Positions 5,378 to 46,780 of a stretch of DNA of 64,000 nt are shown piece after piece. The notes below the pieces were generated by a model. It was not told the DNA's origin and did no database searches. It saw nothing but the letters and a program-made list of their open reading frames with translations. A program made the position numbers and the translations under genes. The stretch spans positions 124,001-188,000 of the IMG/VR virus record IMGVR_UViG_3300040801_002079. The stretch is one strand, 5' to 3'. Position 1 is the first letter of the stretch, and every line of letters begins with the position of its first letter.

Positions 5378-5872
5378 ATGAAACTTAATGAAATTGCGTC
5401 CAGTCGAGCATTAAAAACAAAAAAAGGTAGCCTCATTAAACGCTCCAAGTTTGGAGTTGGGAAACTTATTGGTGGGTACCTCTATCTACATAGAAATTAC
5501 ATCAATGATTTGCCTCCGGAGTTAAAACAAAAAATTATTGCAGCCGAAGAATATCTTGATGGGTTCGAATATAATACAGTTAAGGTTGGGTTAAAAAATG
5601 ATGTTGTAACATTTATAAATTCATCAGATTTTGATGAATCCCCGGAACCCACTGTAGGCAAATATGTTTCAATAAATTCATCGGGTGATACTAAAACCGG
5701 TTCCAGTAATGCAATCTGGCATCATAAATGGCTATGGGTCAAGGATGATTATCAGGGATTTGATGTGGAGGATTCATTTGAGCGATCCAAGAAATATCTG
5801 GAAATGGACATAGATTTCTCTAGAATAGGTAATAAAACATTTTGGGAGGACAACTATGCCAACAAACTATAA
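5378..5872 (+). CDS. Putative head-packaged protein; resembles the C-terminal domain of DNA-phosphorothioation-associated putative methyltransferases
   Basis: Late promoter at 5366; MKLNEI N-terminus; GK..LYLH, DFDESPEP, IWHHKWLWVKDDY pattern recalled from that family. Confidence 0.5.
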   Translation: MKLNEIASSRALKTKKGSLIKRSKFGVGKLIGGYLYLHRNYINDLPPELKQKIIAAEEYLDGFEYNTVKVGLKNDVVTFINSSDFDESPEPTVGKYVSINSSGDTKTGSSNAIWHHKWLWVKDDYQGFDVEDSFERSKKYLEMDIDFSRIGNKTFWEDNYANKL

Positions 5873-6575
5873 CCCATATACCCCACAGGCAGTCTCTGAG
5901 TGGCATCAAGAGCTTTCTAAACATGTCGGATGGCATGTACGTCATGTCGTAGATTATTTCCTAGACAGGGGCTTCACAGAGATTAAGATGATTGATGTTG
6001 GATGCTGCACTGGAAGGCTGGTTGAGCTAATGAATGAGCGTATAACCATTTCTGATGCAATCCTCATTGATGCCATATCCGAATTAACAGATCATGCAAA
6101 ATCAATATTCGGGGACAAATACAAATATGAAACCACTGTTCTTGGAAACAAAATAGGAGTAACGGACATTACTTTGCCTCAGCCAACAAACGGCGCTGTA
6201 AACTTAGGGGGAGCAACTGCACGAAAACAGGCAAACGATGTTCGCCCCAATGTCCCCATAAATACATTTGACGCACTATGGAAAGAGAAGTACATGGGGT
6301 TTGAACCCAACCTAATCAAAATAGATGCTGAAGGTTTGGATATAGATGTTATAGAAGGTATGAGGGAATTCTTAACATCTCTGGATACCAAGCCCCTCAT
6401 TGTTTATGAGATAGCGGGCATAAATATGTCTGAAGACGAAGTTGATGAGGTATATGATAGGCTTTCATTTTTAACCGAAATGGGATATGAGCCAATCTGG
6501 GAAGATTCCCTAGCTCCGAAGAAATGTTGTGACTTAGTAATAGGTATTAAAGATGAAATTGAAACAATTATATGA
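5856..6575 (+). CDS. FkbM-family SAM-dependent methyltransferase
   Basis: MIDVGCCTG SAM-binding motif I; LIKIDAEGLD motif typical of FkbM. Confidence 0.82.
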   Translation: MPTNYNPYTPQAVSEWHQELSKHVGWHVRHVVDYFLDRGFTEIKMIDVGCCTGRLVELMNERITISDAILIDAISELTDHAKSIFGDKYKYETTVLGNKIGVTDITLPQPTNGAVNLGGATARKQANDVRPNVPINTFDALWKEKYMGFEPNLIKIDAEGLDIDVIEGMREFLTSLDTKPLIVYEIAGINMSEDEVDEVYDRLSFLTEMGYEPIWEDSLAPKKCCDLVIGIKDEIETII

Positions 6576-6957
6576 AGCGGATTTAAATTGGGCTACACGG
6601 GATAATGCTCAGCGTCCCGGAAACTTTGATGATAAAAATTATGTACTATTAATGGTTAACATTAAAGACACTTTTGACAATGGACACTCTGGTTTCAAAT
6701 TAGATGTTGAAGATGAAAAAGGTGGACCCAATGCAATTGGTGATAGGTTGACCAAAGCTAAGGCACATTTTGAACAAGGGAAGCCCATGGACTATCCCGA
6801 AGTTGCATACAATCTATCAACAAAAACAGTAGATTATACCAATGGTAGACATCGTGCGGTTGCAGCATATCAAATGGGTAAATGGTTTATTCCTATGTTC
6901 GTATCAAAAGATGGGCTTCACAAATTCAAAGAGGTTGTAAGAACCCTTCCAATCTGA
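6553..6957 (+). CDS. ParB/Srx-like domain protein, putative head-associated
   Basis: TNGRHRAVAA motif; MKLKQLYE N-terminus. Confidence 0.55.
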   Translation: MKLKQLYEADLNWATRDNAQRPGNFDDKNYVLLMVNIKDTFDNGHSGFKLDVEDEKGGPNAIGDRLTKAKAHFEQGKPMDYPEVAYNLSTKTVDYTNGRHRAVAAYQMGKWFIPMFVSKDGLHKFKEVVRTLPI

Positions 6958-6969
6958 TATAATCACATC

Positions 6970-7428
6970 ATGTGGTTACCAGATTTTAGCAATTTATTCT
7001 ATGGAACATCAAATGTCAAGAATGGCAGAATCGGCACTCATTTCAATATTGGGTGGCTTTCGCATCGCCATGAGTTTCCCACCGGAAGCATTGATGATGA
7101 AATCTTAAATAAATTAAGAGCATATCCCATTGTTAATAGATGTAGAGGATTTCATCCCTGTGATTTTTGTGAAGAAAATGTGTTTGGTAATGGTGAAATT
7201 CATGTGATAAGTAACGGTGGGGTTGAATTTAGATCACCCCAAATGCTCATTCATTATATTGAATTCCATAGTTATTTGCCACCTCAACCATTTCTAGACG
7301 CAGTTATTGGGTTGCCTGTAAGCAGAAATGATGTTATTCAGTATATCTTACACCATCACGAACCAACCCTCCAATTCTATGAAGAATGGGAGAAGGGGTT
7401 ACAGACATATCTTAATAAATTTGGATAG
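6970..7428 (+). CDS. conserved hypothetical protein with CxGxHxCxxC putative zinc site
   Basis: CRGFHPCDFC...GNGEIHV...PQMLIHYIEFHSYLPP motif. Confidence 0.65.
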   Translation: MWLPDFSNLFYGTSNVKNGRIGTHFNIGWLSHRHEFPTGSIDDEILNKLRAYPIVNRCRGFHPCDFCEENVFGNGEIHVISNGGVEFRSPQMLIHYIEFHSYLPPQPFLDAVIGLPVSRNDVIQYILHHHEPTLQFYEEWEKGLQTYLNKFG

Positions 7429-7432
7429 ATAT

Positions 7433-10400
7433 TTACCCTGAAACTGTCGGTGTTACGGTTATTGTCGGTGTAACCGTAGCTGTAACAGTTGGTGTAACCG
7501 TTAATGTCGGTGTAACCGTAGCTGTAACAGTTGGTGTAACTGTATTTGTTGGCGTAATCGTTGGTGTAACCGTAGTAGTCGGAGTTACTGTTGGGGTTAA
7601 TGAAATAGTAGCTGTAACAGTTGGTGTAACGGTTGGTGTAGGAGTAGGAGTAGCTTCGATGCCCTTCCATTTTAAAACCAGAGAGTCAATAACTTGCTCA
7701 ACTGTGAAATCATTTAATCCACCCTGAATAAAAATAACTTCACCTATATCAGCATTGAGTCCATCAACCATTGTCATATCATTACAAAATATCCATGATT
7801 CATCCACAACAAATGAATCAACATCCAGTGTTCCAGTGTCAACAATTTCACTGTTATAATATGCCTTAACAGACGTACCATCCTTGAATATTCCACGAAT
7901 AACAATTTCACCCGCTTCGGGATTATTTCCTACACCTTGTGTTAATGTTAATTCCGTTCCTCCATCTGGATAGAACGTAGCTATCGGTCCATCATCAACA
8001 GTGGAATTATAGAGTCTAATTCTTGCTGAACTTGTGTCGGTACTAGAAAAGAATGTGTCGGTGGAACTGTTAGCTATATTGGCAGTTACCCAGAACATCC
8101 CAACATTTGAAAAATCACTTATAGCGTTCCCCTGTGTTCCAACATTTACCGCGCCCGTCACACGGGCAACACTGAGGCCGTTAAATGCATTTTCTCTATA
8201 TGTTATATTGGCTGCATTCCTCCATGAGGGCATTGTGCCGGAATTATTAACCCATGCAGAAACTGATTGACCATCAGTTGGGTTAGTTATAATTTCCCCC
8301 TCCGATGATCCCGTTGATAACCACTGTCCATCACTTGCGTCAAGCCATGTTATAACGGAAACATCCGTATCATCAATCCACCAATTTGGTTTATCATATA
8401 AGTCATGATATGTGAAGCCATTGCCGCTATTGTAGAAGAATGAAATGTCTCCATCAGCTAATAAAACATCACCGTGCACGGCTTGTCCTATATTGCCTTG
8501 GAATTTATATCCAGTATTGGAGCCATAAAGTCCCATATTGGTGTACATCCATTGATTGTCACCAGTATTAGACGTTGGATTAGATGGGGTGTTGGTTACA
8601 GTATGCCACTCAAACGGAGACCCGTTTACAGAAATTCCCATTCTGCCAAGAGTTGAATCCCATTGGACGCAAATTAAATATCGCTGAAGTCTCTGATATT
8701 CTTCACTGAATAGTAAAATTTCATCGTCAATTAAATCTGAATTATTTCTACAAACAAACGCTATTTCGTTTCGGTGTGTACCAAAACTATCAGATATTGA
8801 TATGCCGGAATCATAAGGGTTATAGGGATTATTAACTTCACTCACGTACCTAATCCCTCGTCCTCTGAGCATCAAGAACCACCCATCTCCTTGCCCATCT
8901 TCGCCTGCTGGTCCCTTTTCTGAGCCAACACTTATAAGCGTTTTATCAGAAACATCTTCCATTGGCTCACACCATATCCAGTGGAACCAATCATTATCAA
9001 AATTAAATGATTCTGCTCTTGTTGAACCACTATTCCATCCAGATGTTGAATTATTTGAAAGCACATTATATTCCCTTCCAGTTATCATATCTTCATCTCT
9101 AACGGTGGAAATATCCCATGGAGTTGACATATCAAATTCATAAAAAGCGTCATAGGCATGTGTCATAAAGAGCTTTGTACCATCTGAGCTAATATCAATT
9201 CCATATATCTGCGATGAATCACCTTGCAGGTAATTAAAGTTATGACTGTTAGTTAATGTTGCGCTGGTTATATCCCAAGCCGTACTCAGTGTATATTGTT
9301 CAAGCTCTGCAAAATCTGCTGTTCTATTGCGGCACATTACATACATTTCAGTGCCATCGGGCTTAAATTTTAATCCTACTGGAGAGTCGGAGGTTGACGT
9401 TGTTGCAAGTGGAGTTCCACCAGATACACTTGATGTTATATCCCATGGTGTTCCTAATGTGTATTCAGAGATAGCATCTGTGCCAATAGATGTGCCGAAG
9501 AACTTTGTTCCATCGGGGCTAATATAAATACCATGCATCTCACTATTAACTACAAGCTCCCCCGCAATGGGTGCAGCATTTATATCCCAAGGTGTTGAGC
9601 ATGTTAACTGATAAATCTTAAATGTGCTGGGATTTCTCTCTTCTACCGATACATAGAGACTGGTGCCATCGGGACTGAATATAGCAGCATTTGTAGCGGC
9701 CCAGCGTGATATATCTTCAACATCAGGATGATAAAGATTGCGTCTATTCCCATCACATGTTGCTGTTGTTACATCCCATGGCGTTGACAGTGTAAATGTG
9801 AACAAATCGCTGCCGAATTCGGTAAGGATATATAATTTGGTTCCGTCTGAAGATATATCCATATCCTGTGGAACCCCATCCCAGAAATTAATTTCAAATC
9901 TACCTTCTAGTGTTGCTGTGCTCAAATCTTTAGGTGTTGACATTAGATATTGTGTAATCCAATTACCCTCTTCACCTAAAATATACAATCTGGTATTATC
10001 ATCGCTTATATGAAGCGCTCTTGCTCCGCTGTGTAGGCTTTCATCTACTGATAGTTCAATACTATCATAAGTCATGGTACTAATGTCCCATGGAGTTGAA
10101 AGGCTAAATGAATGCAATGCAAAGTAATCTGCTGGCACTAAATATCGATCAGCTATAGCAAAATATTTAGTTCCATCGGATGAAAAAGCTCCCCCATACT
10201 CTGCCCAATCAACGCCCAACGTCGATAAATCAAGGTAGTAATAACTTGTAGGGTCTAATGTTGTTATATCCCAAGCAGTGGATAGAGTATATGATGCTAC
10301 GCCACCATTGCCGTGCTCATACATAATCAAACCATCTGAGGAAAATTCAATACCATCTTCTTCACCTACATAATAATTAGTATCACTTGTTTTATAATCG

Positions 10401-12055
10401 GTGTACGCTGAATTTATATCCCATGGTGTTCTTAACTCTATCTGATAAACATTGTCTTCCCATGATCCATAAAAATAAAAATATCTACCATCTATGCTAA
10501 AAGTTGATGCTAGGGTGCCACCATCTATCCAAGAAAAGAATTTAGCATTTGATACATGTGCCCCCTCTATTGACCATGGTTTGTTAATTGTTTGCTCACA
10601 TATTCCACTATTCCCGAAATCTGTCACGAATAACCGTGTCCCATCATCTACAAAGTGTATACCAGTAGGATTTTGCCACGGTTCCGTTACGTGCATTCTT
10701 TCCACAATATTGGTGAGGTTCATCGGATCAAACCCTTCGTCTCTTATATTCGTGGTTCTATCTCCGGTTGTTTCATCCCAATATGCCGTTTTTATAAATG
10801 CCCCGGAACTCTCGTCTGCTGTGTTTTCGTTTGTTATAACAGGCTTTTCTCTGGAAGCATCTTGATTAAACTCGAACCATGTGATAACACTTGGGTATAT
10901 TGGAGGAGCGGGTGACGGCGTAGGGGTTGGTGCCAGATAAACATATTCGATGATCAGTTTTTCAGATATTCCAACCTTAACATGTGAATGTTTGGGCGTA
11001 CTACACTCACCATCACCGTCAAATCCAGCCGTATTAACATATCCATATAATTTAACGAATCCAGTGCTTGCAGATGTTGGGACCAAATCAGCTAGATGTA
11101 TAATGGTTTCATTCGCATTTTTATCATATTCAGATCGAATAATCTTATACTGCTTATCACTATCTGTCCCAGTATCTTCAATTTCAATATAACGATTAGG
11201 AAGCATACCGGTTCTTAATTGAATACTTCCGTGATTAGAACCTTCTGTTGTATTCGTAAACGAAGTTTGGGTCGTACTATGTAAATTTATTGTTGTAAAG
11301 TTGCCATCGAAGTTATAACTTTCGATTAAATATGCTCCGTTATTCTTGTTACCAATTTTATATTCGACAATGGCGTTATCCAATCCAACCGCTATTGGTT
11401 TACTCTCAGATATAACAATTGTTGTAATATTTGATATGGAATCGTATGTTGCAGATAGTACAGTGTACATATCGTCATCAACATCCGCATTATATAGTTT
11501 AAACCTGCCCTCATTGATCAACTCTTGTGTATAATTTCCCTTAACAAGAATTTGTGTCTCTGTGGTAGTGTGTACATCAAGGGTTCTTACGGGAACAACC
11601 AAAAATAATTTCTGAAAAGCTAGCTGTGGACGAATATCGCCCCTAACCACAATTGAATCATATGTTGGTATGGAATCAATTTGTGCGCGAACATCATATG
11701 TGTTATTACCTGAAATGCGAACGGTGTCAGTTACGTTTTCTATTTCATTGATGGGCAATACGTTTACAAGATCGGAGTTATCAAAAATTACACCATAACC
11801 ACCAAGACACTCAAACAAATCACAGCAGTCAACCGAGTCGAATCCACATTCGCCATCCCATGTATATCCATAACCCACTGTTTGACACAAGGGATTATTT
11901 TTATAGTCGATGTTAAAAAATATATTTTCCTCGAACTTTACATCCAAATCTTCTCGAAAATTATAGTTCTCAATAATTTCTAGAATTTTCGTATGGTACG
12001 GTTTAACGTCAAGAAAATATTTTTTAAACGAGTCGGTTGGTCTTGAGTTAGTCAT
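7433..12055 (-). CDS. Large virion fibre/adhesin: N-terminal virion module, STPWDI beta-propeller repeats, LamG-like domains, C-terminal TPTV tail
   Basis: 1540 aa; about 10 xSTPWDIxxA repeats; two VITW-starting LamG-like segments; late promoter at 12061-12067 on -. Confidence 0.8.
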   Translation of the reverse strand: MTNSRPTDSFKKYFLDVKPYHTKILEIIENYNFREDLDVKFEENIFFNIDYKNNPLCQTVGYGYTWDGECGFDSVDCCDLFECLGGYGVIFDNSDLVNVLPINEIENVTDTVRISGNNTYDVRAQIDSIPTYDSIVVRGDIRPQLAFQKLFLVVPVRTLDVHTTTETQILVKGNYTQELINEGRFKLYNADVDDDMYTVLSATYDSISNITTIVISESKPIAVGLDNAIVEYKIGNKNNGAYLIESYNFDGNFTTINLHSTTQTSFTNTTEGSNHGSIQLRTGMLPNRYIEIEDTGTDSDKQYKIIRSEYDKNANETIIHLADLVPTSASTGFVKLYGYVNTAGFDGDGECSTPKHSHVKVGISEKLIIEYVYLAPTPTPSPAPPIYPSVITWFEFNQDASREKPVITNENTADESSGAFIKTAYWDETTGDRTTNIRDEGFDPMNLTNIVERMHVTEPWQNPTGIHFVDDGTRLFVTDFGNSGICEQTINKPWSIEGAHVSNAKFFSWIDGGTLASTFSIDGRYFYFYGSWEDNVYQIELRTPWDINSAYTDYKTSDTNYYVGEEDGIEFSSDGLIMYEHGNGGVASYTLSTAWDITTLDPTSYYYLDLSTLGVDWAEYGGAFSSDGTKYFAIADRYLVPADYFALHSFSLSTPWDISTMTYDSIELSVDESLHSGARALHISDDNTRLYILGEEGNWITQYLMSTPKDLSTATLEGRFEINFWDGVPQDMDISSDGTKLYILTEFGSDLFTFTLSTPWDVTTATCDGNRRNLYHPDVEDISRWAATNAAIFSPDGTSLYVSVEERNPSTFKIYQLTCSTPWDINAAPIAGELVVNSEMHGIYISPDGTKFFGTSIGTDAISEYTLGTPWDITSSVSGGTPLATTSTSDSPVGLKFKPDGTEMYVMCRNRTADFAELEQYTLSTAWDITSATLTNSHNFNYLQGDSSQIYGIDISSDGTKLFMTHAYDAFYEFDMSTPWDISTVRDEDMITGREYNVLSNNSTSGWNSGSTRAESFNFDNDWFHWIWCEPMEDVSDKTLISVGSEKGPAGEDGQGDGWFLMLRGRGIRYVSEVNNPYNPYDSGISISDSFGTHRNEIAFVCRNNSDLIDDEILLFSEEYQRLQRYLICVQWDSTLGRMGISVNGSPFEWHTVTNTPSNPTSNTGDNQWMYTNMGLYGSNTGYKFQGNIGQAVHGDVLLADGDISFFYNSGNGFTYHDLYDKPNWWIDDTDVSVITWLDASDGQWLSTGSSEGEIITNPTDGQSVSAWVNNSGTMPSWRNAANITYRENAFNGLSVARVTGAVNVGTQGNAISDFSNVGMFWVTANIANSSTDTFFSSTDTSSARIRLYNSTVDDGPIATFYPDGGTELTLTQGVGNNPEAGEIVIRGIFKDGTSVKAYYNSEIVDTGTLDVDSFVVDESWIFCNDMTMVDGLNADIGEVIFIQGGLNDFTVEQVIDSLVLKWKGIEATPTPTPTVTPTVTATISLTPTVTPTTTVTPTITPTNTVTPTVTATVTPTLTVTPTVTATVTPTITVTPTVSG

Positions 12056-12121
12056 AAATGTATTTATCTTATTATTATCTACTTGAAATCGCCTATTTTG
12101 TTTGATATAATCCTATTTATT

Positions 12122-12993: not shown

Positions 12994-13029
12994 ATTTTTA
13001 ATATAAATATACAATAGGAACATTATAAT

Positions 13030-21195: not shown

Positions 21196-21214
21196 TATTT
21201 ATCCGTCATAAATA
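21196..21214. promoter_or_regulatory. Back-to-back divergent T4-type late promoters
   Basis: TATTTAT 21196-21202 (- strand ATAAATA) and ATAAATA 21208-21214. Confidence 0.7.
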
Positions 21215-21244: not shown

Positions 21245-21661
21245 ATGAAAAAGACATTAAAAGACAAATTGATTGATGAGGCTATGGATTTCTATAGGAT
21301 TGATAGCCTGCTTGATGATGAAGATTTCGACATGGGAGAAGATGAAGATATGGATTTCGACTTCGATGATGAAGATTTCGATGATGAAATGGGGGAAGAA
21401 AATCCAGACAAGGCTGGTATGATAAGACCAGTTAAGGGTGCATATTTGGTTTATAAAAGAGTTACTCCCAATAATAACTATGAGGAGTTATGGGTTTATA
21501 ATTTAGGTAACGTTAAATCTCAGACTCGGATCAGAAACTCTATACTGGCTGGCACGGACATTGATCCTGTCGATCTAAGATCACCCGATAATGAGCAATC
21601 AGCTACTACATGGTCGAAGGGTAATGTGCAATATCTTCATATCGATGGATTGCCCAATTAA
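21245..21661 (+). CDS. Putative head/virion protein with acidic N-terminal region
   Basis: late promoter; DEDFD-rich tract; AGMIRPVKGAYLVYKR...YEELWVYN. Confidence 0.65.
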   Translation: MKKTLKDKLIDEAMDFYRIDSLLDDEDFDMGEDEDMDFDFDDEDFDDEMGEENPDKAGMIRPVKGAYLVYKRVTPNNNYEELWVYNLGNVKSQTRIRNSILAGTDIDPVDLRSPDNEQSATTWSKGNVQYLHIDGLPN

Positions 21662-23472: not shown

Positions 23473-23496
23473 TTCCCTTTATTCATAAATACCCTT

Positions 23497-23817
23497 ATGA
23501 AATTAAAAACTTTATTCGAAGCCAAAAAATCAGAAGATAAGGTGGTATTTAAGGAAACTGATCCGCAGTTGCCGTTTCCTAATGATACCATCACGGCTAT
23601 TAAAAAGAGAATTAATGTTTTTGCTAAGGACTTGACAACCGACTGGGATAGTGCAGTTGAAATGTTAGATGCTGTCCTTATGGAATTGAAAGTTCCAAAG
23701 CCTCAAGCTTATTTAAAAGAGCGGTGGAGACAATACCAAGAGTTAATTGAATTTACAGTAGAAAATTTATATGACTCTAGGGGCTTTGGTGGCAACTGGA
23801 ATAGAGTTGTAAAATAA
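23497..23817 (+). CDS. Putative head-internal protein
   Basis: late promoter 23485-23491; MKLKTLFEA N-terminus. Confidence 0.65.
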   Translation: MKLKTLFEAKKSEDKVVFKETDPQLPFPNDTITAIKKRINVFAKDLTTDWDSAVEMLDAVLMELKVPKPQAYLKERWRQYQELIEFTVENLYDSRGFGGNWNRVVK

Positions 23818-31315: not shown

Positions 31316-32476
31316 ATGCATAATTACGACTATATCGTATATATCGGGCGATTCCAGCCCTTCCATAATGGTCATCTGACCACGCTTATGAAAGCTCTGC
31401 GCTTGGGCCAAAAGGTTATCATGGTGCTAGGCTCTTCAAATTCCCCTCGAACCTATAAAAATCCTTGGACTTCTACTGAACGAGAAGTAATGATTCGCAG
31501 TTGCCTTAGTGCAACCGAGAACGAAGCATTAGAATTTGCTCATATAGAAGACCATCTTTATTCCAATGAGAAATGGTTACTTGATGTTCGTACCGAGGTG
31601 CGCAAGATCATTACCACCACTCGCACACAGATTGTTTTAAATGAAGATGATTATAATGATCCAAATTATAAACACTCTGTTGCCCTCATTGGGTATAACA
31701 AAGATGAATCCAGCTTTTATACTAAAGAGTTTCCGGATTGGCCCTTAATTGAAACGGGACCACATATTAAGGAAAGTACCGGGAAAGGGAAGCCAGTCGG
31801 ATCAACCATGATTCGCTTCTTAATGTTTACTGGCGATTTGGGATATGTTGAAAGCAACGTTCCTCCCGCCATCTATGCATTTCTTGAAAATTTTACCACC
31901 ACTGAGGACTTTCAGTATCTTCAGGACAGCTTCGACCACTACTACAACGAAGAAAAGCAGTACAAGGATTTACCATATTGGATGAATTTCTTCACCGCTG
32001 ATGCCGTAGTGGTACAGTCGAACCATGTCTTGCTTGGTAAGCGCAAACATCACCCCGGTAAAGGTCTTTGGGCTTTACCCGGAGGTCATGTTAGCGTAAA
32101 TGAAACTTCATATGAAGCCGCTTTGCGTGAACTTACCGAGGAAACTAGAATTAAAGTTCCAAAGGGTAAAATTATCGGTAGTATGGTAATGAATCGTCGC
32201 TTTGATCACCCCGCACGGTCTCTCAGATGTCGTGTAACGGGAAATCATGGTAGGACCGTAACCGATGCCTTCTTCTTTAAGCTTGACGGAGTAGCGTCAA
32301 GCGGAGAAGCAATACATTCACTCCCTAAAGTAAAGGGTGATGATGATTTAGAGGAAGCCCGCTGGTTCCCGCTAGATGAGGTTCGAAACATGCGCTCCGA
32401 GCTTTTTGAAGATCATTTGGACATTATTGAATATTTTGTAGATAGAGCACCCAAGGAGTCTACTTCTTCTTGGTAA
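31316..32476 (+). CDS. nadM: Bifunctional NMN adenylyltransferase / Nudix ADP-ribose pyrophosphatase (NadM-Nudix, NatV-like)
   Basis: IGRFQPFHNGH HxGH motif; Nudix box GGHVSVNETSYEAALRELTEET. Confidence 0.95.
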   Translation: MHNYDYIVYIGRFQPFHNGHLTTLMKALRLGQKVIMVLGSSNSPRTYKNPWTSTEREVMIRSCLSATENEALEFAHIEDHLYSNEKWLLDVRTEVRKIITTTRTQIVLNEDDYNDPNYKHSVALIGYNKDESSFYTKEFPDWPLIETGPHIKESTGKGKPVGSTMIRFLMFTGDLGYVESNVPPAIYAFLENFTTTEDFQYLQDSFDHYYNEEKQYKDLPYWMNFFTADAVVVQSNHVLLGKRKHHPGKGLWALPGGHVSVNETSYEAALRELTEETRIKVPKGKIIGSMVMNRRFDHPARSLRCRVTGNHGRTVTDAFFFKLDGVASSGEAIHSLPKVKGDDDLEEARWFPLDEVRNMRSELFEDHLDIIEYFVDRAPKESTSSW

Positions 32477-32505
32477 ATTAAACTAACCCATGTTACATAG
32501 GAGGT

Positions 32506-33957
32506 ATGAACATGAACACAACTTTTCTAAAATCAATTCTTAACGTACACGGTGCGAAGACCGATGGATACAAGTTTGATCATCACAAGCAGACTGTTCC
32601 CGGTATGACCAACGCCTTTTCTTACATCGAATCCCGAGGAACTAACTTGGATTGGGATAACCCCCGAACCCTGTTCTTTGGATTACAGATGTATCTTAAA
32701 GAGTATATGACTCAGCCTGTTACTCATGAAGATATCGATGCCATCATTCCCCTAGTGGAAAAATATGGTGTTGAATTCAACGAGAAGGGATGGAGACATA
32801 TTGTTGATGCCCATGGAGGCATTCTTCCATTGAAAATTCGGGCAGTTAAAGAGGGTACAGTGATGCCATTAAGTAATGTAATGGTGTCAGTTGAAGCCAC
32901 TGATCCCGAGTGCTACTGGTTAGCACCTTTCGTAGAAACTGCTTTGCTCCGTGCAGTGTGGTATCCAACCACGGTTGCATCCAATTCATTCCGCGCCAAG
33001 GAAATCATCAAAGGATTCTTGGATGAGACTGCTGATAACGGTGATCTTGAACTTCCGTTCAAGTTGCATGACTTCGGTGCAAGGGGTGTATCTTCCGCTG
33101 AAAGTGCACAGATTGGAGGTGCAGCACATCTTGTCAACTTCATGGGTTCTGATACCTTTGAGGGTGCGCTTGCAGCCATGTTGTATTACGACACTGATAT
33201 GCCAGCCGGTACGATTCCTGCTGCCGAACACTTCACCATTACCTCTTGGGGTCCAGAAGGTGAAACCAGTGCGTACCGAAATATGCTTCGGACTTTCGGT
33301 GGTCCTGATAAAATGCTTGCAGTGGTGTCTGATTCTTACGACATGTATAATGCTGCCGAGCATATTTGGGGTGAAGAGCTTCGTGATGACGTTATCAACA
33401 TGGGTGGAACCTTAGTGGTTCGTCCTGATTCTGGTGACCCACTGGTTGTTCCCGTTGATGTCATTGAAATTTTAATGGAGAAGTTTGGTTACACTATCAA
33501 CAAGAAGGGATACAAGGTTCTTCCTGATTGCATTCGAGTTATTCAGGGTGACGGTATCACCGTTGATAACATCAAAGCCATTCTTACTCGCATGAAGTCT
33601 CGTAAGCTTAGCGCATCTAATATTGCATTCGGAATGGGCGCTGGTCTGCTTCAGCAGGTTGACCGTGATACCTACAAGTTTGCAATGAAGTGTTCTGCAA
33701 AGGAAATCAATGGTCGATGGGAAGATGTTTGGAAAGACCCTAAGACTGATTCCGGTAAGAAGTCCAAGCGTGGTCGTGTCACGCTGGTACAGGATCGCAA
33801 TACAAAAGAGTTTAGAACCATTAGACTTGATGGGCCAACTTCTGTTAAGGAAACGGAACTAAATGTAATGCGAACTGTATATAATAACGGTGTTGTTGAG
33901 TCCGAGTTTCAGACGTTTGACGAAATTCGTGAACTTTCAAATTCGTACTTGAAATAA
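32506..33957 (+). CDS. nadV: Nicotinamide phosphoribosyltransferase
   Basis: TDGYKFDH, LHDFGARGVS, PAAEH, VVSDSYD, VVRPDSGDP, VIQGDG, FGMGAGLLQ; SD spacing favours ATG 32512. Confidence 0.96.
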   Translation: MNMNTTFLKSILNVHGAKTDGYKFDHHKQTVPGMTNAFSYIESRGTNLDWDNPRTLFFGLQMYLKEYMTQPVTHEDIDAIIPLVEKYGVEFNEKGWRHIVDAHGGILPLKIRAVKEGTVMPLSNVMVSVEATDPECYWLAPFVETALLRAVWYPTTVASNSFRAKEIIKGFLDETADNGDLELPFKLHDFGARGVSSAESAQIGGAAHLVNFMGSDTFEGALAAMLYYDTDMPAGTIPAAEHFTITSWGPEGETSAYRNMLRTFGGPDKMLAVVSDSYDMYNAAEHIWGEELRDDVINMGGTLVVRPDSGDPLVVPVDVIEILMEKFGYTINKKGYKVLPDCIRVIQGDGITVDNIKAILTRMKSRKLSASNIAFGMGAGLLQQVDRDTYKFAMKCSAKEINGRWEDVWKDPKTDSGKKSKRGRVTLVQDRNTKEFRTIRLDGPTSVKETELNVMRTVYNNGVVESEFQTFDEIRELSNSYLK

Positions 33958-34600: not shown

Positions 34601-34659
34601 CATTTGCAATGTTATAAATTTGCTGGTATAATAAATAATTCATAACAACAGGTAAAAAA

Positions 34660-35154
34660 ATGAAGATTAGAGAATTAAAAGAGAGCGCAGACTATCCGGA
34701 AATTATAGTTATGATAGGGCTTCCCGGTGTAGGGAAGAGTACCGTAATAAAGCGGGATTACCCAAACCATACAATCGTATCTTCGGATGATATTATTGAG
34801 AAATATGCTGCCGAAGAAGGAAAGACCTACGATCAGGTTTTTCAGAAATATATTGGGCAAGCTTCAGGCGAAATGAAATCAGTATTTCGCAGAGCAGTCC
34901 AGAATAATGAGAACATTGTCTGGGATCAGACAAATCTTTCCAAGAAGAAAAGGAGAGGTATACTGAGTCAGGTTCCTCGGCATTATAGAAAAGTTGCCGT
35001 GGTATTTGATGTCTCTGATAAAGTTCGTTATGAGCGAATGGCGCAGAGAGAAGGTAAGAGTATTCCTGCTCATGTAATACAGAGTATGGAAAAAGCGTAT
35101 CAGGCCCCAACCAAAGATGAGGGGTTTGATGAAATTAGAGTAATAAAGGAGTAA
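34660..35154 (+). CDS. AAA_33 P-loop kinase (polynucleotide-kinase-like module)
   Basis: MIGLPGVGKST, SSDDII, VWDQTN, lid R..R; MKIRELKE N-terminus. Confidence 0.8.
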   Translation: MKIRELKESADYPEIIVMIGLPGVGKSTVIKRDYPNHTIVSSDDIIEKYAAEEGKTYDQVFQKYIGQASGEMKSVFRRAVQNNENIVWDQTNLSKKKRRGILSQVPRHYRKVAVVFDVSDKVRYERMAQREGKSIPAHVIQSMEKAYQAPTKDEGFDEIRVIKE

Positions 35155-38660: not shown

Positions 38661-38754
38661 GTTTAAGTATTTCCTTTAGTAGTTGGTTTAAAAATAAAAG
38701 TGCTTAAAGTGTTACTTTGGACTAAACATGTTTCGATATCCTACCTCCTTTAGA

Positions 38755-38872: not shown

Positions 38873-38898
38873 AGTTAACTTTGGAGTAATTTTAAAAA

Positions 38899-39102: not shown

Positions 39103-39122
39103 GCTTAAACGAGGTTAATATA

Positions 39123-40029: not shown

Positions 40030-40031
40030 TG

Positions 40032-40038
40032 ATAAATA
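40032..40038 (+). promoter_or_regulatory. T4-type late promoter driving the tmRNA
   Basis: ATAAATA just after the acb1 stop and before the acceptor piece. Confidence 0.7.
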
Positions 40039-40043
40039 AGTAT

Positions 40044-40328
40044 AACATTGTACGATCCATTTAAGGATTTATTGTGGACGGCGGTTCGATTCCGCCCATT
40101 TCCACCAAAAGCATACCTAATGGGTATATTTTATGATGGGAATGCACTGGTTTCGACATGGTAAGTTGGTAAATGAGGACAATGCGGCAACCGTGAAAGT
40201 CGTTAGGGTAAAACCAAAGAAGCAAAAAACTAAATGCAAACGATAGCATATATGATCAGGCCCTTGCCGCTTGATCGTGGGTTTAGCCAACCTTGAACCA
40301 GAACGGGTTAGGGGGGAGTAATCCCCCC
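40044..40328 (+). ncRNA. ssrA: Circularly permuted (two-piece) tmRNA; tag ANDSIYDQALAA
   Basis: acceptor piece with T arm and CATTTCC-A-CCA ends at 40107; coding piece starts GGGAATG at 40138 (G3:U70, A73); tag frame 40236-40274; terminator 40311-40328; late promoter 40032-40038. Confidence 0.9.
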
Positions 40329-40351
40329 GAATTTTATCAAAAGGGACTTCT

Positions 40352-41107: not shown

Positions 41108-41145
41108 TATTGACCCACCCATCTTCAATGTGATATAATTTCAAA

Positions 41146-42156
41146 ATGAATTATGAGTGCATTGAAGATGTAGTCAGAGAGCATGTTGCATTTAAAAATG
41201 TGTCAGCATCTGGCTGGAACCAAGCATATTGTGAATATTGTGGCGATGGCGGGAGAACCAAGGGTCCCCGTGGTAATTGGCTATTTGATGGTGATATGCT
41301 ATTCTTCAATTGCTATAATTGTGGAACCAAAGCAAATTTTGATCCTCACAGGGAGATACCATTTAGTAAGCACATGCATGGTGTCTTCAAGGCTCACGGA
41401 ATCCCATTAAAGTTCTGTTATGCGTTAATCCCCAAAGATGCTAATGCCGAAACTAGGGAAGTTAAGCCTCAAAAACTTAAATTTGATTCATTTGAATTAC
41501 CGGATCATTTTTATAAACTATCAAGTGCAGCAATGGATGACAAAAAAGCAATCATTGCTCGTGAACATTTAATAAACAAACGTAAAATTGATCCGGACGA
41601 TTTCCCGTTTTATCTATCAAGCGGAGTTACACAATCATCTAGCCCTAAAGATATAAGTTTGGCTAAGACATTTCAGCAAAGACTTATAATTCCATCATAT
41701 GTCAATGATACATTAATTGGGTATGAGGGAATGGCCCTATATCCAAATAAAAACAAATATATAACAATTGGTTCTAATTTGGTACACGGCTATTCTAATA
41801 TTTTCAGGGAAGAGGGGCATGTGCCACTGTTTGTAACTGAAGGATTTTTTGATTCATATCATGTAAATGGAGTCGCATTGTGTACAAACTCCTTAAGTAA
41901 TAAGCATATAGAGCTTCTGGAAAAGACATCTAGGCCCAAGGTTGTTATACCGGATAGGAAGAATACACATAACGCTTTAGCTGAAGAGGCACTTAATCTT
42001 GGATGGGGCGTGTCGCTACCCGAAATAAAGCCATATAAGGATATTTCAGAGGCAATTGAGCACTATGGTGTATTTTTCGTATTAAATTCGGTTATGAAAT
42101 CCATAAAATACGGGGATAGTGGAAAAATTTATTTAAAAATATATAATGTTGCATAA
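41146..42156 (+). CDS. DNA primase (T4 gp61-like)
   Basis: zinc ribbon CEYC...CYNC; TOPRIM FVTEGFFDS, VVIPDR, KDISE; TTGACC-17-TATAAT promoter upstream. Confidence 0.85.
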   Translation: MNYECIEDVVREHVAFKNVSASGWNQAYCEYCGDGGRTKGPRGNWLFDGDMLFFNCYNCGTKANFDPHREIPFSKHMHGVFKAHGIPLKFCYALIPKDANAETREVKPQKLKFDSFELPDHFYKLSSAAMDDKKAIIAREHLINKRKIDPDDFPFYLSSGVTQSSSPKDISLAKTFQQRLIIPSYVNDTLIGYEGMALYPNKNKYITIGSNLVHGYSNIFREEGHVPLFVTEGFFDSYHVNGVALCTNSLSNKHIELLEKTSRPKVVIPDRKNTHNALAEEALNLGWGVSLPEIKPYKDISEAIEHYGVFFVLNSVMKSIKYGDSGKIYLKIYNVA

Positions 42157-42181
42157 ATAAGTTTGTAAATCTCATTTTTTT

Positions 42182-42373
42182 ATGGAGTATAATATGGATC
42201 ACATGGAAGTTGTTGACACCCAAGAAAAAGCAATCGAAGCTGCTGCTAGAGAGCTTTTTAAACTGACCATTTTAGCCGAAGAAGAGCGTATCTCTAAAAT
42301 TGAGATTAATAACAGCGCTGATTTTTCATTTAGACGCGAATATTTTCAAAAGGCTATACAAAATTTGTTATAA
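42182..42373 (+). CDS. hypothetical protein
   Basis: late promoter 42153-42159. Confidence 0.55.
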   Translation: MEYNMDHMEVVDTQEKAIEAAARELFKLTILAEEERISKIEINNSADFSFRREYFQKAIQNLL

Positions 42374-42568
42374 ATGCACTCGAAGGCGTACAAGTTTTCA
42401 AAAAAATCTTCTGTTGACTTTATAGTTGAGTTCCGCACATCGGATAATCCCCATAATTTTTTTCGCAAATACAACATTGTTTATAATAATGATGGGTCAG
42501 TATACGATTTGGACTTGAAACAATCATTCAAATGCATATATAATTGGGCTGAAGCTATAGCTGTATAA
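42374..42568 (+). CDS. hypothetical protein
   Basis: ATG abuts the upstream stop. Confidence 0.55.
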   Translation: MHSKAYKFSKKSSVDFIVEFRTSDNPHNFFRKYNIVYNNDGSVYDLDLKQSFKCIYNWAEAIAV

Positions 42569-42580
42569 TTGTGAGGAACA

Positions 42581-42913
42581 ATGAAAAAAGAAAACGCATT
42601 AGAAAGTGTATCTATCGACAAGCCCTATATAAATGGGTTGATTGAAATATATGGGGTTATCGGCGCAATTCATGCAATGAGAGAAAGGTTTACCGGGGAT
42701 ATGAATGAAAAAATACCCGATAGATTTTTAAGAATAATGGTATGGCAATTAACACACTCCATTGAGGGGCTTGAGGAAGAGGCTAATATGACCTTTGAAA
42801 GTATTGCAGATATTGCTCACTTTGGTCAAGTCACTGAAATCTATACGTTGCGCACAATGTGCAACCATATTTTGGGTGGAGCCGACAATCTAAAAGAATA
42901 TGTGAAATCTTAG
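42581..42913 (+). CDS. hypothetical protein
   Basis: GAGG SD; 110 aa. Confidence 0.6.
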   Translation: MKKENALESVSIDKPYINGLIEIYGVIGAIHAMRERFTGDMNEKIPDRFLRIMVWQLTHSIEGLEEEANMTFESIADIAHFGQVTEIYTLRTMCNHILGGADNLKEYVKS

Positions 42914-42957
42914 TTTAAAGTTCTAATAAATACCTAAAACAAAGGTCACATATTTAA

Positions 42958-44547
42958 ATGAAATTAGAATTTAGACAGGGCTTAGTCCAAATACAATCTA
43001 CACCACCATTTATAACTACATCGGGCGGCAGTGTAAGTCTAAATTCGTCTGTAACCGATAATATTGTAACATTTGCACACGGTGAAGATAATTACCTTTT
43101 TATAGAATCTAATGATCTTCCCGGTGCATGGACGGGTCCATTCGGGGCTGGAACAACGTGGCTCTATTGGAATCTGGATATAGAGACTGGAGTAAGAACC
43201 TTCGGAAGTACCACTCTTGACCCAACTGGATATGGAGATGATATGCCATCCAGTCCAGTAATGGGTGAAATGTTCTTTTCAACATTAGAAAATAAAATGA
43301 AGGAATGGAATGGTTATAAATGGGTAACCGTTCTGCGTGTACTTGCAGGGGAAATAACTGGGGGAACATTAACGCCATATAGCGAAGGATCACAAATCTC
43401 AGATGATTTTCAAGCATATGCAGGATATTTGCTTTTTGATGAAAATGGAAATCCATTTAAAGAATCTGATCCATTTAATCGTGGTCATTTTGTACATACT
43501 GAGACAAGGCTTAAAGCACAAAATACACCACTCAATCAATACGAGCAAAGAAATACCGAATATTCATATACATCGGATACATCAATACCTGAGGGTTATT
43601 GTGTAGCACTGATAGAAGACAAAACTCTAACCGTTGCATCATATAGAAAGCCTGAAAGACCATGTATTGGAATATCATTAATGGACTTATATGCTGGTGA
43701 TATGGGCAGGTATGTGACGGAGGGGGTGCTGACCTTTGAGGGCTGGAATTTTGATTCCGTACCTAATACCCCTGTTTGGGTTGGACCAAATGGAGAAGTT
43801 ACCACCACTGTACCAACCGAAACTTCAATTCAGAGGTTAGGGTTTGTGGTTTCAAAAAACAGTATACTATTGGATATAAGAGAGCCGGTTTTACTAGACC
43901 CATCTTATAAGGACTGCTTTGTTCCATCACCAACTCCAACTCCAACTCCAACTGTTACACCAACCATTACTGCAACCGTTACACCCACGGCGACAGTTAC
44001 ACCAACTGTTACAGCTACGGCATCTGTTACACCAACTGTTACCCCAACTACTACAGTTGATCCAACAGTAACACCAACTGTTACAGCCGCTATTACACCA
44101 ACACCAACAGTAACACCAACAGTTACCCCAACTATGACGGTAACGCCTGAAGTTAGCCCATCACCAACAACAACTCCTGCTCCATCTGCTGAGGCCACAC
44201 CAACCCCAACTGTTACTTCAGGATTAACTCCAACTGTTACTCCAACTTCTACAGTTACACCAACAATTACTTCAACTGCGGAAGTAACACCAACCCCAAC
44301 AGCTACGACTGGTCTAACACCAACAGTTACACCAGAGGTTACACCAACGAATACGGTAACACCTCCCGTTACACCAACAGTTACTCCATCTTTATCTGTT
44401 GGGGCATCCCCCACACCTACTCCAACGGTTACACCAACGAACACGGCAACAACTACACCTACCCCAACAGTTACGCCGACAATGACAGTAACCCCAACTC
44501 CTTCCCCATTAAGCGGATTGAAGACACTCTTTATTGACTGGACATAA
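42958..44547 (+). CDS. Virion fibre/decoration protein with about 190-aa TPTV mucin-like stalk
   Basis: late promoter 42926-42932; C-terminal third is nearly pure T/P/V/A/S. Confidence 0.8.
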   Translation: MKLEFRQGLVQIQSTPPFITTSGGSVSLNSSVTDNIVTFAHGEDNYLFIESNDLPGAWTGPFGAGTTWLYWNLDIETGVRTFGSTTLDPTGYGDDMPSSPVMGEMFFSTLENKMKEWNGYKWVTVLRVLAGEITGGTLTPYSEGSQISDDFQAYAGYLLFDENGNPFKESDPFNRGHFVHTETRLKAQNTPLNQYEQRNTEYSYTSDTSIPEGYCVALIEDKTLTVASYRKPERPCIGISLMDLYAGDMGRYVTEGVLTFEGWNFDSVPNTPVWVGPNGEVTTTVPTETSIQRLGFVVSKNSILLDIREPVLLDPSYKDCFVPSPTPTPTPTVTPTITATVTPTATVTPTVTATASVTPTVTPTTTVDPTVTPTVTAAITPTPTVTPTVTPTMTVTPEVSPSPTTTPAPSAEATPTPTVTSGLTPTVTPTSTVTPTITSTAEVTPTPTATTGLTPTVTPEVTPTNTVTPPVTPTVTPSLSVGASPTPTPTVTPTNTATTTPTPTVTPTMTVTPTPSPLSGLKTLFIDWT

Positions 44548-44550
44548 GAC

Positions 44551-45933
44551 ATGGAAATTACTAGCAATATTAAAAACAAAATAGAAGAAATTTATAAAGA
44601 TTCTAATTATAATGTTAGAACCGTTAGCTTAGGACGCAAAAAGGTTGGAGATGAAAAAACGGATGAAATTGCCATTGTCATTCGAGTAGAAAAGAAAAAA
44701 CCTTTAAGTGAATTGAGCGCAGACGAAATTGTTCCAAAAACAATAACTATAGATGGACAAGATTTTAAGACTGATGTTATCGAAGACCCTAGTGAAATTA
44801 CAGCAATAGCCTGCTTTACTTCAACTGATCCTGACGTTTTAAAGTTGCAGGGTGACCCAGCGCTTCTTACTCCTCTTAAGGGTGGACAAGAACTTACACA
44901 ATTCCCAACAGGGTGGACAGACTTTGGTGGCGGAAGCTATGGATTCACTGTGGGAACATTGGGATTCATCGGAGTAGATGACATTGATGGAAAAATTGTC
45001 GGTGTGACCAATAATCATGTAGTAATTGGGAACGGAGATATAAATGGAGACAGGGATATACCGACAGAGGTTGCATCCCCATATAATATTATTGAACCTA
45101 TAGAATGGGTGGTTGATAGCTCATCGTATGCTCCCGGAGCATTACTACGTGATGAAAGTGCCCCCGGAACATTTGTAGATGGCGCACCAAATATCAAGAG
45201 ATATATTCCATTTGATGTAGATGGAACAAACTATGTGGATGTTGCGCTTCTGATTATGGACCCAACGAAGGTTGACAACACATCATATCAAATACACCAA
45301 CCAACAGGGGAGACAGCATATACGGATTATTTGCCATTTGCAAGCACCGCAGAGATCGATAGTTTACTAGCTACTCCCAGAACAATATACAGTACAGGAA
45401 GAACTACGGGACCAAAGGGGTGGGGAGTAAGTGCTTCATGTACATTAGAAATAACAGCATTAGCTGAAACCATTAGTGTTAGTGGGTTATCCGATACAAA
45501 CTTAACCTTTTCAGATGTTGTGCGATTTGAGTTTACTGATGGCAGTAATTATCCAATCGATAGTGGAGATTCTGGATCAGCCGTTGTTGCAGATTTTGAT
45601 GGAACTAGAAAAATAGTAGGGTTAGCATTTGCAGGAAGCCTAACAGCAGGATTCTTCTGTAGAATTGATCGAATAGCTGATGCTATAAAAATACGCCAGT
45701 GGGATGAGCACTATGTTTACGATGATACTGTTCCAGCAGGGGCCACACTTAAAGCTGCACCCATTGAGGATTCATCAGCGGATAGTGTAACTGTTACTCC
45801 TGAATGTAAATATCTATTCCAAGCTGGAACATCAATGACAGATACATATGATGATCTATTAGCTATAACTCCACTAGCGTGTTCAGTTACGCCAACTGTT
45901 ACACCCGAAGTAACACCAACCCCATCTGGTTAG
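44551..45933 (+). CDS. Trypsin-like (S1) serine protease with N-terminal prodomain and TPTV tail
   Basis: GTLG, TNNHV (His), VDVALL (Asp), GDSGS (Ser), VGLAFAG. Confidence 0.85.
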   Translation: MEITSNIKNKIEEIYKDSNYNVRTVSLGRKKVGDEKTDEIAIVIRVEKKKPLSELSADEIVPKTITIDGQDFKTDVIEDPSEITAIACFTSTDPDVLKLQGDPALLTPLKGGQELTQFPTGWTDFGGGSYGFTVGTLGFIGVDDIDGKIVGVTNNHVVIGNGDINGDRDIPTEVASPYNIIEPIEWVVDSSSYAPGALLRDESAPGTFVDGAPNIKRYIPFDVDGTNYVDVALLIMDPTKVDNTSYQIHQPTGETAYTDYLPFASTAEIDSLLATPRTIYSTGRTTGPKGWGVSASCTLEITALAETISVSGLSDTNLTFSDVVRFEFTDGSNYPIDSGDSGSAVVADFDGTRKIVGLAFAGSLTAGFFCRIDRIADAIKIRQWDEHYVYDDTVPAGATLKAAPIEDSSADSVTVTPECKYLFQAGTSMTDTYDDLLAITPLACSVTPTVTPEVTPTPSG

Positions 45934-45975
45934 GTGTTGACATAACTAAAAATATTTTTTATAAATAATAGCATA

Positions 45976-46419
45976 ATGAAAAAAATAAGTAAAAAATATC
46001 CCTTAATTGTTGAATCACACCCCGATGATTATAATGGATACGAGTTCATAACTCTAATTCGCTATAATGATATCAACCATTTGACCATTGTTGATAATAC
46101 GGATAAGAAATTCATTAACTGCTATGTGCTGGACCTGTGTAAAACGGTTAATCTAGAAGAAGAAAGAATAATAGATGTTACTCAAGAATGGTACAACACA
46201 TCTAAAGATGCATATCCAATATCAATAGAGTTCTCCAAGCTTGGAATGACAGATGATGTGTCTAAGATTTTAAGAAGCTTCTCCATCGATTTTGTTACAC
46301 GAGTTATCGGACCTCTTCCACATTTCAGTATGAAAGGTGTAACTAAAGTTAGAAAGAGAAAGCGTAAAGATGTGCCTGAGGGAATTCGTATTGTACAAAA
46401 GAAGCTTAAAGATTATTAA
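45976..46419 (+). CDS. conserved jumbo-phage hypothetical protein
   Basis: TATAAATA 45960; basic C-terminus. Confidence 0.65.
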   Translation: MKKISKKYPLIVESHPDDYNGYEFITLIRYNDINHLTIVDNTDKKFINCYVLDLCKTVNLEEERIIDVTQEWYNTSKDAYPISIEFSKLGMTDDVSKILRSFSIDFVTRVIGPLPHFSMKGVTKVRKRKRKDVPEGIRIVQKKLKDY

Positions 46420-46780
46420 GCTTTGATAAAAGTCTGAAGGATTCTTTTACATCCTGATTATTAAACGTCTGAGCAACCCGCTTGGATGCTTCCAGAACTT
46501 CATTTCCCTCTTCCGAAAGCTCTCCTGTTTCATCAACCAAATTATGGTACTCAAGCATCTCCTTACCTCGTGTAGTTAATTCTAAGGCGTTTTCGGTTGA
46601 TCTTAGGGCACCAAGCTTCAATAATGTGTTTCTGGCAACAGAGAGGTTCTCGGAGGCCACAGTGTTCTCATATGCAACCTCTGGTGTGGGAGATACCTGA
46701 ACTATGACCAACACCGCTTTCTGTGTATCATTTAATATAGCAGTGTTAGGATTAATTAATTCTTTAAGTAGTGTTTTCAT
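46406..46780 (-). CDS. Putative head-associated protein
   Basis: MKTLLKEL N-terminus; winged-helix-like LTTRGKEML segment. Confidence 0.55.
   Translation of the reverse strand: MKTLLKELINPNTAILNDTQKAVLVIVQVSPTPEVAYENTVASENLSVARNTLLKLGALRSTENALELTTRGKEMLEYHNLVDETGELSEEGNEVLEASKRVAQTFNNQDVKESFRLLSKLNNL

Follow-up and report, generated by a model that had tools for sequence, protein, structure and literature searches.

Leader-bearing genes of the window

The 64,000-nucleotide stretch of DNA analysed here (the window; positions are those of the window unless preceded by 'genome') corresponds to bases 124,001-188,000 of a single 316,801-bp contig with 39.4% G+C, an IMG/VR virus record with direct terminal repeats that is rated complete. 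It encodes several proteins, otherwise unrelated, that begin with a similar short leader of the form MK(L/I)xx(L/I)xE, which is the subject of this work. The source of the window is a complete jumbo myophage with T4-type head genes, and our own open reading frame (ORF) and codon-bias script, applied to the whole genome, predicted 452 genes in it. The portal protein is nearest (~49% identity) to those of the Xanthomonas phages Xoo-sp13 and XacN1 and the Stenotrophomonas phages CM1 and RAS14, followed by those of RsoM2USA, PA5oct, Atu_ph07 and Rak2-type jumbo phages. When 20 kb of the window were compared with GenBank phages by megablast, no match was obtained, and a distant blastn search with the window found short matches only, to Vibrio and Xanthomonas phages. 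A related-locus search in IMG/VR with the ParB-like (6553) and 106-residue (23497) proteins found no relatives. Six genes of the window are concerned (a slash follows the Glu after which a leader would be cut):

5378..5872, plus strand: 164-residue protein with the N-terminus MKLNE/IASS (short form of the leader), similarity to the C-terminal domain of TIGR04096 and a match to phrog_16075; a weak candidate
6553..6957, plus strand: 134-residue protein of ParB/Srx fold, leader MKLKQLYE/A (codons 6553-6576), third gene of the unit that starts at 5378
21245..21661, plus strand: 138-residue protein starting with MKKTLKDKLIDE/A, followed by a very acidic stretch and a conserved C-terminal domain
23497..23817, plus strand: 106-residue protein, leader MKLKTLFE/A, with homologues in Xoo-sp13, XacN1, CM1 and RAS14 that align only from residue 16
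34660..35154, plus strand: 164-residue AAA_33/polynucleotide-kinase-like P-loop kinase, leader MKIRELKE/S; PF13671, 82.1 bits against a cut-off of 27
46406..46780, minus strand: 124-residue protein with the N-terminus MKTLLKE/L, at the end of a tail/baseplate operon

An earlier note on this DNA had quoted these six N-termini as sharing one motif, and all of them are present at the positions it gave. The motif itself describes 6553 (MKLKQLYEA), 23497 (MKLKTLFEA) and 34660 (MKIRELKES), whereas it fails for the other three: 5378 (MKLNEIASS) has no Glu at position 8, and 21245 (MKKTLKDKLIDEA) and 46780 on the minus strand (MKTLLKEL), each being the second start of its ORF, are spaced differently. 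The list was also incomplete because most members of the set lie outside the window.

Of the functional assignments made in the same note, those of the ParB-like protein and the P-loop kinase agree with the searches. For the ParB-like protein (6553), the Foldseek top matches were Osa (4ovb), ParB (6sdk), Noc, KorB and sulfiredoxin (Srx), all of them ParB/Srx proteins, at weak E-values (6e-3 to 0.5) and TM-scores of 0.4-0.5; it had no Pfam match, and its NGRHR motif is invariant in 10 homologues. The P-loop kinase (34660) was recognised as such by PF13671 and shows a simple layout of leader, 6-residue linker, strand beta-1 and P-loop with the Walker A sequence GLPGVGKS; its matches to the TIGR04075 Pnkp family are partial. 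In both proteins the leader is conserved. The 'phosphorothioation-associated domain' of 5378 is the weak case: with TIGR04096, the profile of the DNA phosphorothioation-associated putative methyltransferases, the protein aligns at positions 322-463 of 478 only, which make up the C-terminal domain, and its 31.7 bits are far below the cut-off of 150. The 106-residue protein gave no lead in Pfam, PHROG, NCBIfam or protein atlas searches.

Enrichment of the leader at gene starts

The observed counts were compared with a null in which the predicted N-termini were shuffled column by column (600 shuffles), which keeps the positional composition. The pattern MK[LI]x{2,4}[LI]xE starts 12 of the 452 predicted proteins against 0.81 expected, the stricter MK[LI]xx[LIV]xE starts 7 against 0.41, and MKLKxLxE[AS] starts 4 against 0.00; none of the 600 shuffles reached any of these counts. 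At internal Met residues the pattern was found in 2-3 of ~2,050 cases. A six-frame scan of the 316.8-kb genome with MK[LIVM]xx[LIVMF]xE retrieved 8 sites, 7 of them at gene starts. The over-representation at N-termini is thus borne out, and for the core set the motif is real and not a product of chance. A loose criterion, accepting any [LI]xE that ends at residues 7-12, returned 47 proteins against ~34 expected and was discarded as mostly noise.

Four unrelated proteins share the tight form MKLKxLxE[A/S]: those at 6553 and 23497 in the window and two elsewhere in the genome (101299 and 230041). Further members, with the Glu allowed at positions 8-10, are the kinase at 34660 and those given in the remaining lines below:

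genome 68230, minus strand: looser match, MKIYSLPE
genome 101299: GNAT acetyltransferase, leader MKLKHLFES
genome 101730: p121, leader MKLKELITE, with a TTG start
genome 108825 and 109247: p140 and p111, leaders MKLDQILNE and MKLDQVLNE
genome 212274, minus strand: CCA-adding tRNA nucleotidyltransferase, leader MKLSILLE; PF01743, 119 bits
genome 230041: minimal protein-kinase-like protein, leader MKLKDLQEA
genome 246706, minus strand: p122 of the head module, starting with the tag itself, MKLNDILLE/V
genome 265694: p154, leader MKIEDILNE

Judged on sequence, the core leaders all end with L/I-x-E at residue 8 or 9, and in 6 of 11 the Glu is followed by A, S or G. In an all-against-all BLASTP comparison, similarity among the bearers was confined to residues 1-9, and their families differ. 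The AlphaFold2 (AF2) model of the protein at genome 230041 (pLDDT, the model confidence, 85) had 25 Foldseek matches at E<=1e-3, all of them kinases (PINK1, EGFR, MK2, HopBF1, APH) with TM-scores of ~0.3, and the predicted structure agrees with the bilobal fold of a kinase, including the Gly-rich loop and a catalytic loop of the HxxN type. The motifs GxGxFS, DLHxxNIM.RR and SDPF are conserved in its family, and phrog_15752 (T7 gp0.7-like kinase) matches it weakly. The remaining bearers had no family match in Pfam, PHROG and related searches.

An acidic stretch rich in Asp, Glu and Trp follows the leader directly in several tagged proteins, for example DDEDFDMGEDEDMDFDFDDEDFDDE and RWYEDEWEDEDGD (window 21245-21661; genome 108825-109582). 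Such proteins may mimic DNA or serve inside the head to balance charge.

Conservation of the leader as a peptide

Across the leader genes, the codons of the Leu/Ile residues 3 and 6 vary (CTC, CTT, TTG, TTA, CTG, ATT and GTA), and the upstream DNA is unrelated. Since both codon choice and upstream DNA differ between genes, selection acts on the peptide, and no duplicated DNA cassette is involved. Structure prediction gave a matching picture. The model of the ParB/Srx protein (6553) has a pLDDT of 85.8 overall and of less than 50 for residues 1-8, and residues 1-10 of the kinase-like protein (genome 230041) are likewise of low confidence before a confidently predicted fold. In these models, therefore, the leader appears as an add-on outside the fold of the cargo.

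Orthologues retain it as well. Nine orthologues of the kinase-like protein with 28-53% identity, including RAS14 WAX21561 (MKLIDLFED) and proteins of two large IMG/VR contigs (MKINNLLEI and MKIQTILED), all have M1, K2 and E8, and the linker behind these residues is poorly conserved. Among metagenomic homologues of the AAA_33 kinase with at least 52% identity, 32 of 34 carry a form of the tag (18 MK[LIM]xx[LI]xE, 5 with the Glu at position 9, and 9 short MK[LI]xE), and the P-loop lies 16-23 residues from the start in most of the tagged ones; homologues with at most 47% identity and the Xoo-sp13 orthologue start directly at beta-1. The CCA-enzyme orthologue of a close relative (61% identity) starts MKIKTLIE/S, and those of Xoo-sp13 and of another relative, the 350-kb contig G004, lack the ~30-residue N-terminal extension. 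In the ParB/Srx family, MK-L-x-x-L/I...E is retained by nine metagenomic homologues, whose indels all fall within the leader; across the families compared, indels are restricted to leader or linker. The consensus across three homologue families is M-K-[L/I/M]-x-[D/E/Q]-[L/I]-x-E, with the Glu at 8 or 9. In the kinase and ParB-like families, 13 homologues have a short MK[LI]xE[LI] instead of the full leader, and this short form is the one present in 5378.

The two remaining proteins of the window keep an N-terminal [LI]xE in their orthologues. The Xoo-sp13 homologue of 21245, which has only the C-terminal ~90 residues in common with it, starts MKTLKALREE/M, and the N-terminus of 21245 is possibly a longer leader. 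The orthologues of 46780 start (V)KFLKE/L in Xoo-sp13 and MNLMKDLME/A in G004. In the 106-residue family, XacN1 ORF219 begins (V)KFLQSLIE/A.

Late-promoter-like context

The sequence ATAAATA occurs within 60 nucleotides (nt) upstream of 8 of 15 leader genes, compared with 74 of 437 others (Fisher p = 0.002), although its 156 copies in the whole genome against ~140 by our own estimate do not represent an excess. Four copies precede leader genes of the window:

5366..5372, plus strand: ATAAATA box 5 nt before the ATG of 5378, heading the unit of 5378, 5856 (FkbM methyltransferase) and 6553
21208-21214: ATAAATA box 30 nt before 21245
23485..23491, plus strand: ATAAATA box 5 nt before the ATG of 23497, which has no Shine-Dalgarno sequence
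34631..34637, plus strand: ATAAATA box 22 nt before the kinase gene 34660

The claim that several of the quoted N-termini lie right behind such boxes accordingly holds for 5378 and 23497 and, at larger distances, for 34660 and 21245, whereas no copy lies within 60 nt of 6553 or 46780 (the nearest to the latter is 76 nt upstream). Among the leader genes without a box of their own, 6553 follows 5378, 109247 follows 108825 and others belong to the head module; upstream of 101299 and 101730 there are a small membrane ORF and an ATAAATA box. All leader genes except the loose match at genome 68230 on the minus strand are thus found in a late-promoter-like unit or in head-module context. Late expression of these genes is suggested by the presence of a homologue of the T4 late sigma factor gp55 and of boxes before structural genes.

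In 15 genes of the genome, ATAAATA stands exactly 5 nt before the ATG without a Shine-Dalgarno sequence (in the window, 5366-5380 and 23485-23499 on the plus strand and 12055-12067 and 58393-58405 on the minus strand), and among spacings shorter than 17 nt no other occurs more than once. The fixed spacing and the missing Shine-Dalgarno sequence suggest leaderless late mRNAs, and on these sequence features the mRNA of 23497 is probably leaderless and late. T4 has no gene of this class, and Xoo-sp13, G004 and a further related contig, G003, have 0-1 each.

A second, near-leaderless class comprises six genes genome-wide with a TATAAT -10 box (often TGnTATAAT) exactly 6 nt before the ATG, such as the DUF7919 gene 6970 (6953-6972), which follows the 5378 unit behind this box of its own, and gene 41146 (41128-41148). 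The leaderless-type ATAAATA box also precedes the gene of a 1540-residue protein (7433-12055, minus strand) without a Pfam match, which may be a large virion or ejection protein.

Head genes, protease and related phages

The genome encodes the following head and late functions, together with a gp24-like paralogue of the capsid protein:

genome 203927-204379 (locus L009:16927-17379), minus strand: 150-residue protein directly downstream of the major capsid gene, starting MELLKELLGE/S, with no family match
genome 204466-205893, minus strand: gp23-like major capsid protein
genome 244596-245213, minus strand: prohead protease of the PF03420/S77 (T4 gp21) type; 80.4 bits against a cut-off of 27; phrog_207, 2.9e-57
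genome 247729-249414, minus strand: portal
genome 252664, plus strand: homologue of the T4 late sigma factor gp55

Several of these proteins themselves have leader-like N-termini. The protease starts MKQQLLIE/T, and its orthologues in relatives start METLIE and MELLIE. An 'LIE-9' site has been noted in T4 gp21 (PMC9026906), and the protease of this phage resembles it in having L-I-E near its start. Three small proteins sit between portal and protease; one of them is p122, which carries the tag, and the other two have looser [LI]xE N-termini (MNLKFLKSLNE/D and MKRTFIEFLTE/K). In T4, this interval holds gp67 and gp68. The scaffold-like protein starts MEILQNLLE/N and contains abundant LxE sites. 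The capsid protein contains LLAE46/T, which, judged from its position, seems to correspond to the T4 capsid maturation site. The start of the 150-residue protein beside the capsid gene, MELLKELLGE, is close to the MELITELFDE of a 682-residue T4 gene, which we take to be alt (encoding the packaged ADP-ribosyltransferase Alt). Complex prediction for the protease with residues 1-30 of the 106-residue protein scored 0.00 and carries no weight in either direction.

The tag recurs in relatives in versions of their own. In five related IMG/VR contigs (capsid protein 61-67% identical), a degenerate DNA pattern for the motif had 25 matches compared with 1 for a reversed-pattern control, and in 80 capsid-flanking loci the pattern coincided with an ORF start 10 times and with none of 6,068 internal Met residues. 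Six proteins of G004 start MKIQx[IL](I)xE, and in G003 the tagged starts number seven or eight. Since the versions differ by contig and phage, each lineage has its own flavour, as would be expected of a signal that co-evolves with its receptor. The N-terminal pair test was also run on T4 as a positive control, where it retrieved MKTYQEFIAE twice (IPII/IPIII), along with MELITELFDE and two related leaders; the present consensus has no match in T4.

Proposed capsid targeting and alternative explanations

The earlier note had proposed, by analogy with T4 internal proteins, that the leader is a capsid-targeting signal and that the ParB-like protein, the P-loop kinase and the phosphorothioation-associated protein might be packaged and injected as early effectors. 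In its T4-like form, this idea fits every computational test that was run (type of protease, sigma factor, form of the tag, unrelated bearers, conservation). From the genes and from the analogy with T4 we infer packaging, cleavage and injection, and consider it fairly probable that the leader is a T4-style capsid-targeting propeptide cut after its Glu. The tagged proteins would be made late and drawn by their leader into the scaffolding core of the prohead, where the gp21-type (S77) protease would cut the leader off after the Glu of [L/I]-x-E; the mature proteins would then be retained in the head and pass into the host together with the DNA. In the window, the strong predicted cargo proteins are 6553 and 23497, for which confidence is high, and 34660, for which it is good; 5378, 21245 and 46780 (minus strand) are possible cargo with low to moderate confidence. 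Elsewhere in the genome, the predicted cargo comprises 101299, 101730, 108825, 109247, 230041, 265694 and, on the minus strand, 212274 and 246706.

Several points weigh against capsid targeting. The cleavage specificity of the protease of this clade is assumed from that of T4. The 5-residue MKLxE form found in some homologues may be too short to target anything. The CCA enzyme, the P-loop kinase and the ParB/Srx protein linked to a methyltransferase gene have plausible late roles inside the cell that need no packaging. The tag system is not uniform across the clade either, since Xoo-sp13 has only one protein with the consensus (MKIQSILNE/D, with the Glu at 9, encoded right beside the protease gene), and the exact degenerate DNA pattern had no match in this phage. 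The main text and supplement of the XacN1 paper, which include a gel-band proteome, do not mention ORF219 as a virion protein. Finally, gene starts are individually somewhat uncertain because the ORF caller was home-made.

The leading alternative to capsid targeting, although in our view rather unlikely, is that the tag has been conserved for another function: recognition by a phage or host factor (a chaperonin, a protease of N-end degradation or regulation, or recruitment to a membrane or assembly site), or a zymogen pro-sequence that would hold the enzymes inactive until cleavage by the head protease, without retention in the virion. The data describe a conserved, portable and unstructured tag on late proteins and do not give its destination, and the phage encodes GroES-like and other assembly factors. 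However, the tag ends with [L/I]-x-E like the T4 leaders and is found also on small head-module proteins, on the scaffold and on the protease itself, and capsid targeting is the sole characterised precedent in a phage with this type of protease.

It is considerably less probable that the shared N-termini reflect a constraint on translation initiation, in which late and often leaderless mRNAs would favour A-rich second codons and a particular 5' coding sequence. Many bearers do lie 5 nt behind ATAAATA without a Shine-Dalgarno sequence, and N-termini beginning MK or MKL are frequent in any case (78 and 32 of 452, respectively). Nonetheless, such a constraint hardly accounts for the varying Leu3 and Leu6 codons (CTC, CTT, TTG, TTA, ATT, GTA) or for a Glu8 that is invariant down to orthologues of 28% identity; 108825, 109247 and 101730 have normal AGGAG sites, other leaderless late genes (MTNSRP, MGFILL) have no tag, and column shuffles that keep the composition yield 0.8 matches against the 12 observed. 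Chance resemblance among MKL... N-termini, or a 5' gene cassette that was recently duplicated, might concern the misfitting 5378, 21245 and 46780 and recalls the near-background count of the loose [LI]xE criterion (47 against ~34), but for the core set it is very improbable given that 0 of 600 shuffles reach the observed counts, that upstream DNA and codon choice are dissimilar, and that the tag is conserved in orthologues from other phages.

Comparison with known systems and implications

Leaders of the capsid-targeting type are an established feature of T4 and close relatives, and [L/I]-x-E is taken from the T4 leaders as the form that gp21 cuts. The leader described here resembles those of IPI, IPII and IPIII and the Alt propeptide in being a short MK or ME leader with hydrophobic residues at i and i+3 and a terminal [L/I]-x-E, carried by otherwise unrelated, fast-evolving proteins in a phage with a gp21-family protease and late-promoter-like boxes. 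In the T4 internal proteins, a leader of ~10 residues directs the protein into the scaffolding core and is removed by gp21, and the proteins are ejected with the DNA (PMC3012670, PMC9026906). The proposed system differs in its consensus (MK[LI]x[DEQ][LI]xE with Glu at 8-9, compared with MKTYQEFIAE and Glu at 10 in T4), in the size of the set (at least 12 compared with ~4-6), and in including recognisable enzymes (kinase-like, AAA_33, CCA, GNAT, ParB/Srx). Many of its leader genes also look like leaderless late transcripts, which T4 does not have.

In giant phages related to phiKZ, the cleavage motif is reported to be S/A/G-x-E. Many of their head-loaded proteins are trimmed C-terminal to Glu by a gp21-related protease (phiKZ gp175, SPN3US gp245, 201phi2-1; PMC9026906, PMC5694885 and PMC10052503). 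They belong to another clade and have long propeptides without a common short leader, whereas the phage studied here has a clear PF03420 protease and a portal closest to those of XacN1, Xoo-sp13, RAS14 and Rak2-type phages. In phage P1, loading requires Dar proteins that act as an ordered set and is not known to involve a shared cleavable 8-residue leader. The likeness to P1 lies in its head-associated anti-restriction proteins (the DarA/DarB/Hdf system), which are linked to the formation of the head and to DNA ejection (PMC9024508, PMC12810830). No Dar homologues turned up in our searches, none of which was aimed at Dar.

A literature search found no description of a leader of the capsid-targeting type in this jumbo-phage clade, and the PA5oct paper contains nothing on propeptides. 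The principle is already known, and the new features are the consensus itself, the number of proteins that carry it and the enzymes among the cargo. More tentatively, the clade of cultured and uncultured jumbo myophages related to XacN1, RAS14 and Xoo-sp13 might load a ready-made enzyme kit by means of a portable leader of 8-9 residues and deliver it with the DNA; this kit would consist of a minimal protein kinase, a polynucleotide-kinase-like P-loop kinase, a CCA enzyme, a GNAT, a ParB/Srx NTPase or nuclease, and many orphans. If this were true, sequence alone would show which proteins these phages inject, and tRNA-repair and host-modifying enzymes would act ahead of any phage gene expression. 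If it functions as in T4, the leader would also provide a sequence rule for recognising which proteins enter the host with jumbo phages of this large, little-studied group, likely counter-defence or take-over factors and mostly orphans, and would add a second natural tag, different from that of T4, by which foreign proteins could be loaded into large capsids. The cargo that it predicts is unusual, since a CCA-adding enzyme, a protein kinase and a P-loop kinase of polynucleotide type are among it.

Neighbouring genes and other observations

The unit at 5378-7428 appears to be a DNA-modification module encoded as separate genes (TIGR04096 C-terminal domain, FkbM methyltransferase, ParB/Srx and DUF7919), and an R2K-clade ATP-grasp gene (4587-5369) lies just upstream of it. 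Just upstream of the 34660 kinase, NadR-like NMN adenylyltransferase/Nudix and nicotinamide phosphoribosyltransferase-like genes (31316-33957), judged by their N-terminal sequences and by synteny with XacN1 ORF216, would constitute an NAD salvage module as in other large phages.

Four small proteins encoded on the minus strand at genome 221277, 221540, 221948 and 229494 (loci L011 and L021) have twin-arginine-like starts (MKRRTLLKGL, MKRRSLLKGF, MKRRNFLKLV and MFRMKRREFV...). Within the 82-residue product of 229494, a stretch of 37 residues shares 51% identity with the major capsid protein (residues 65-101).

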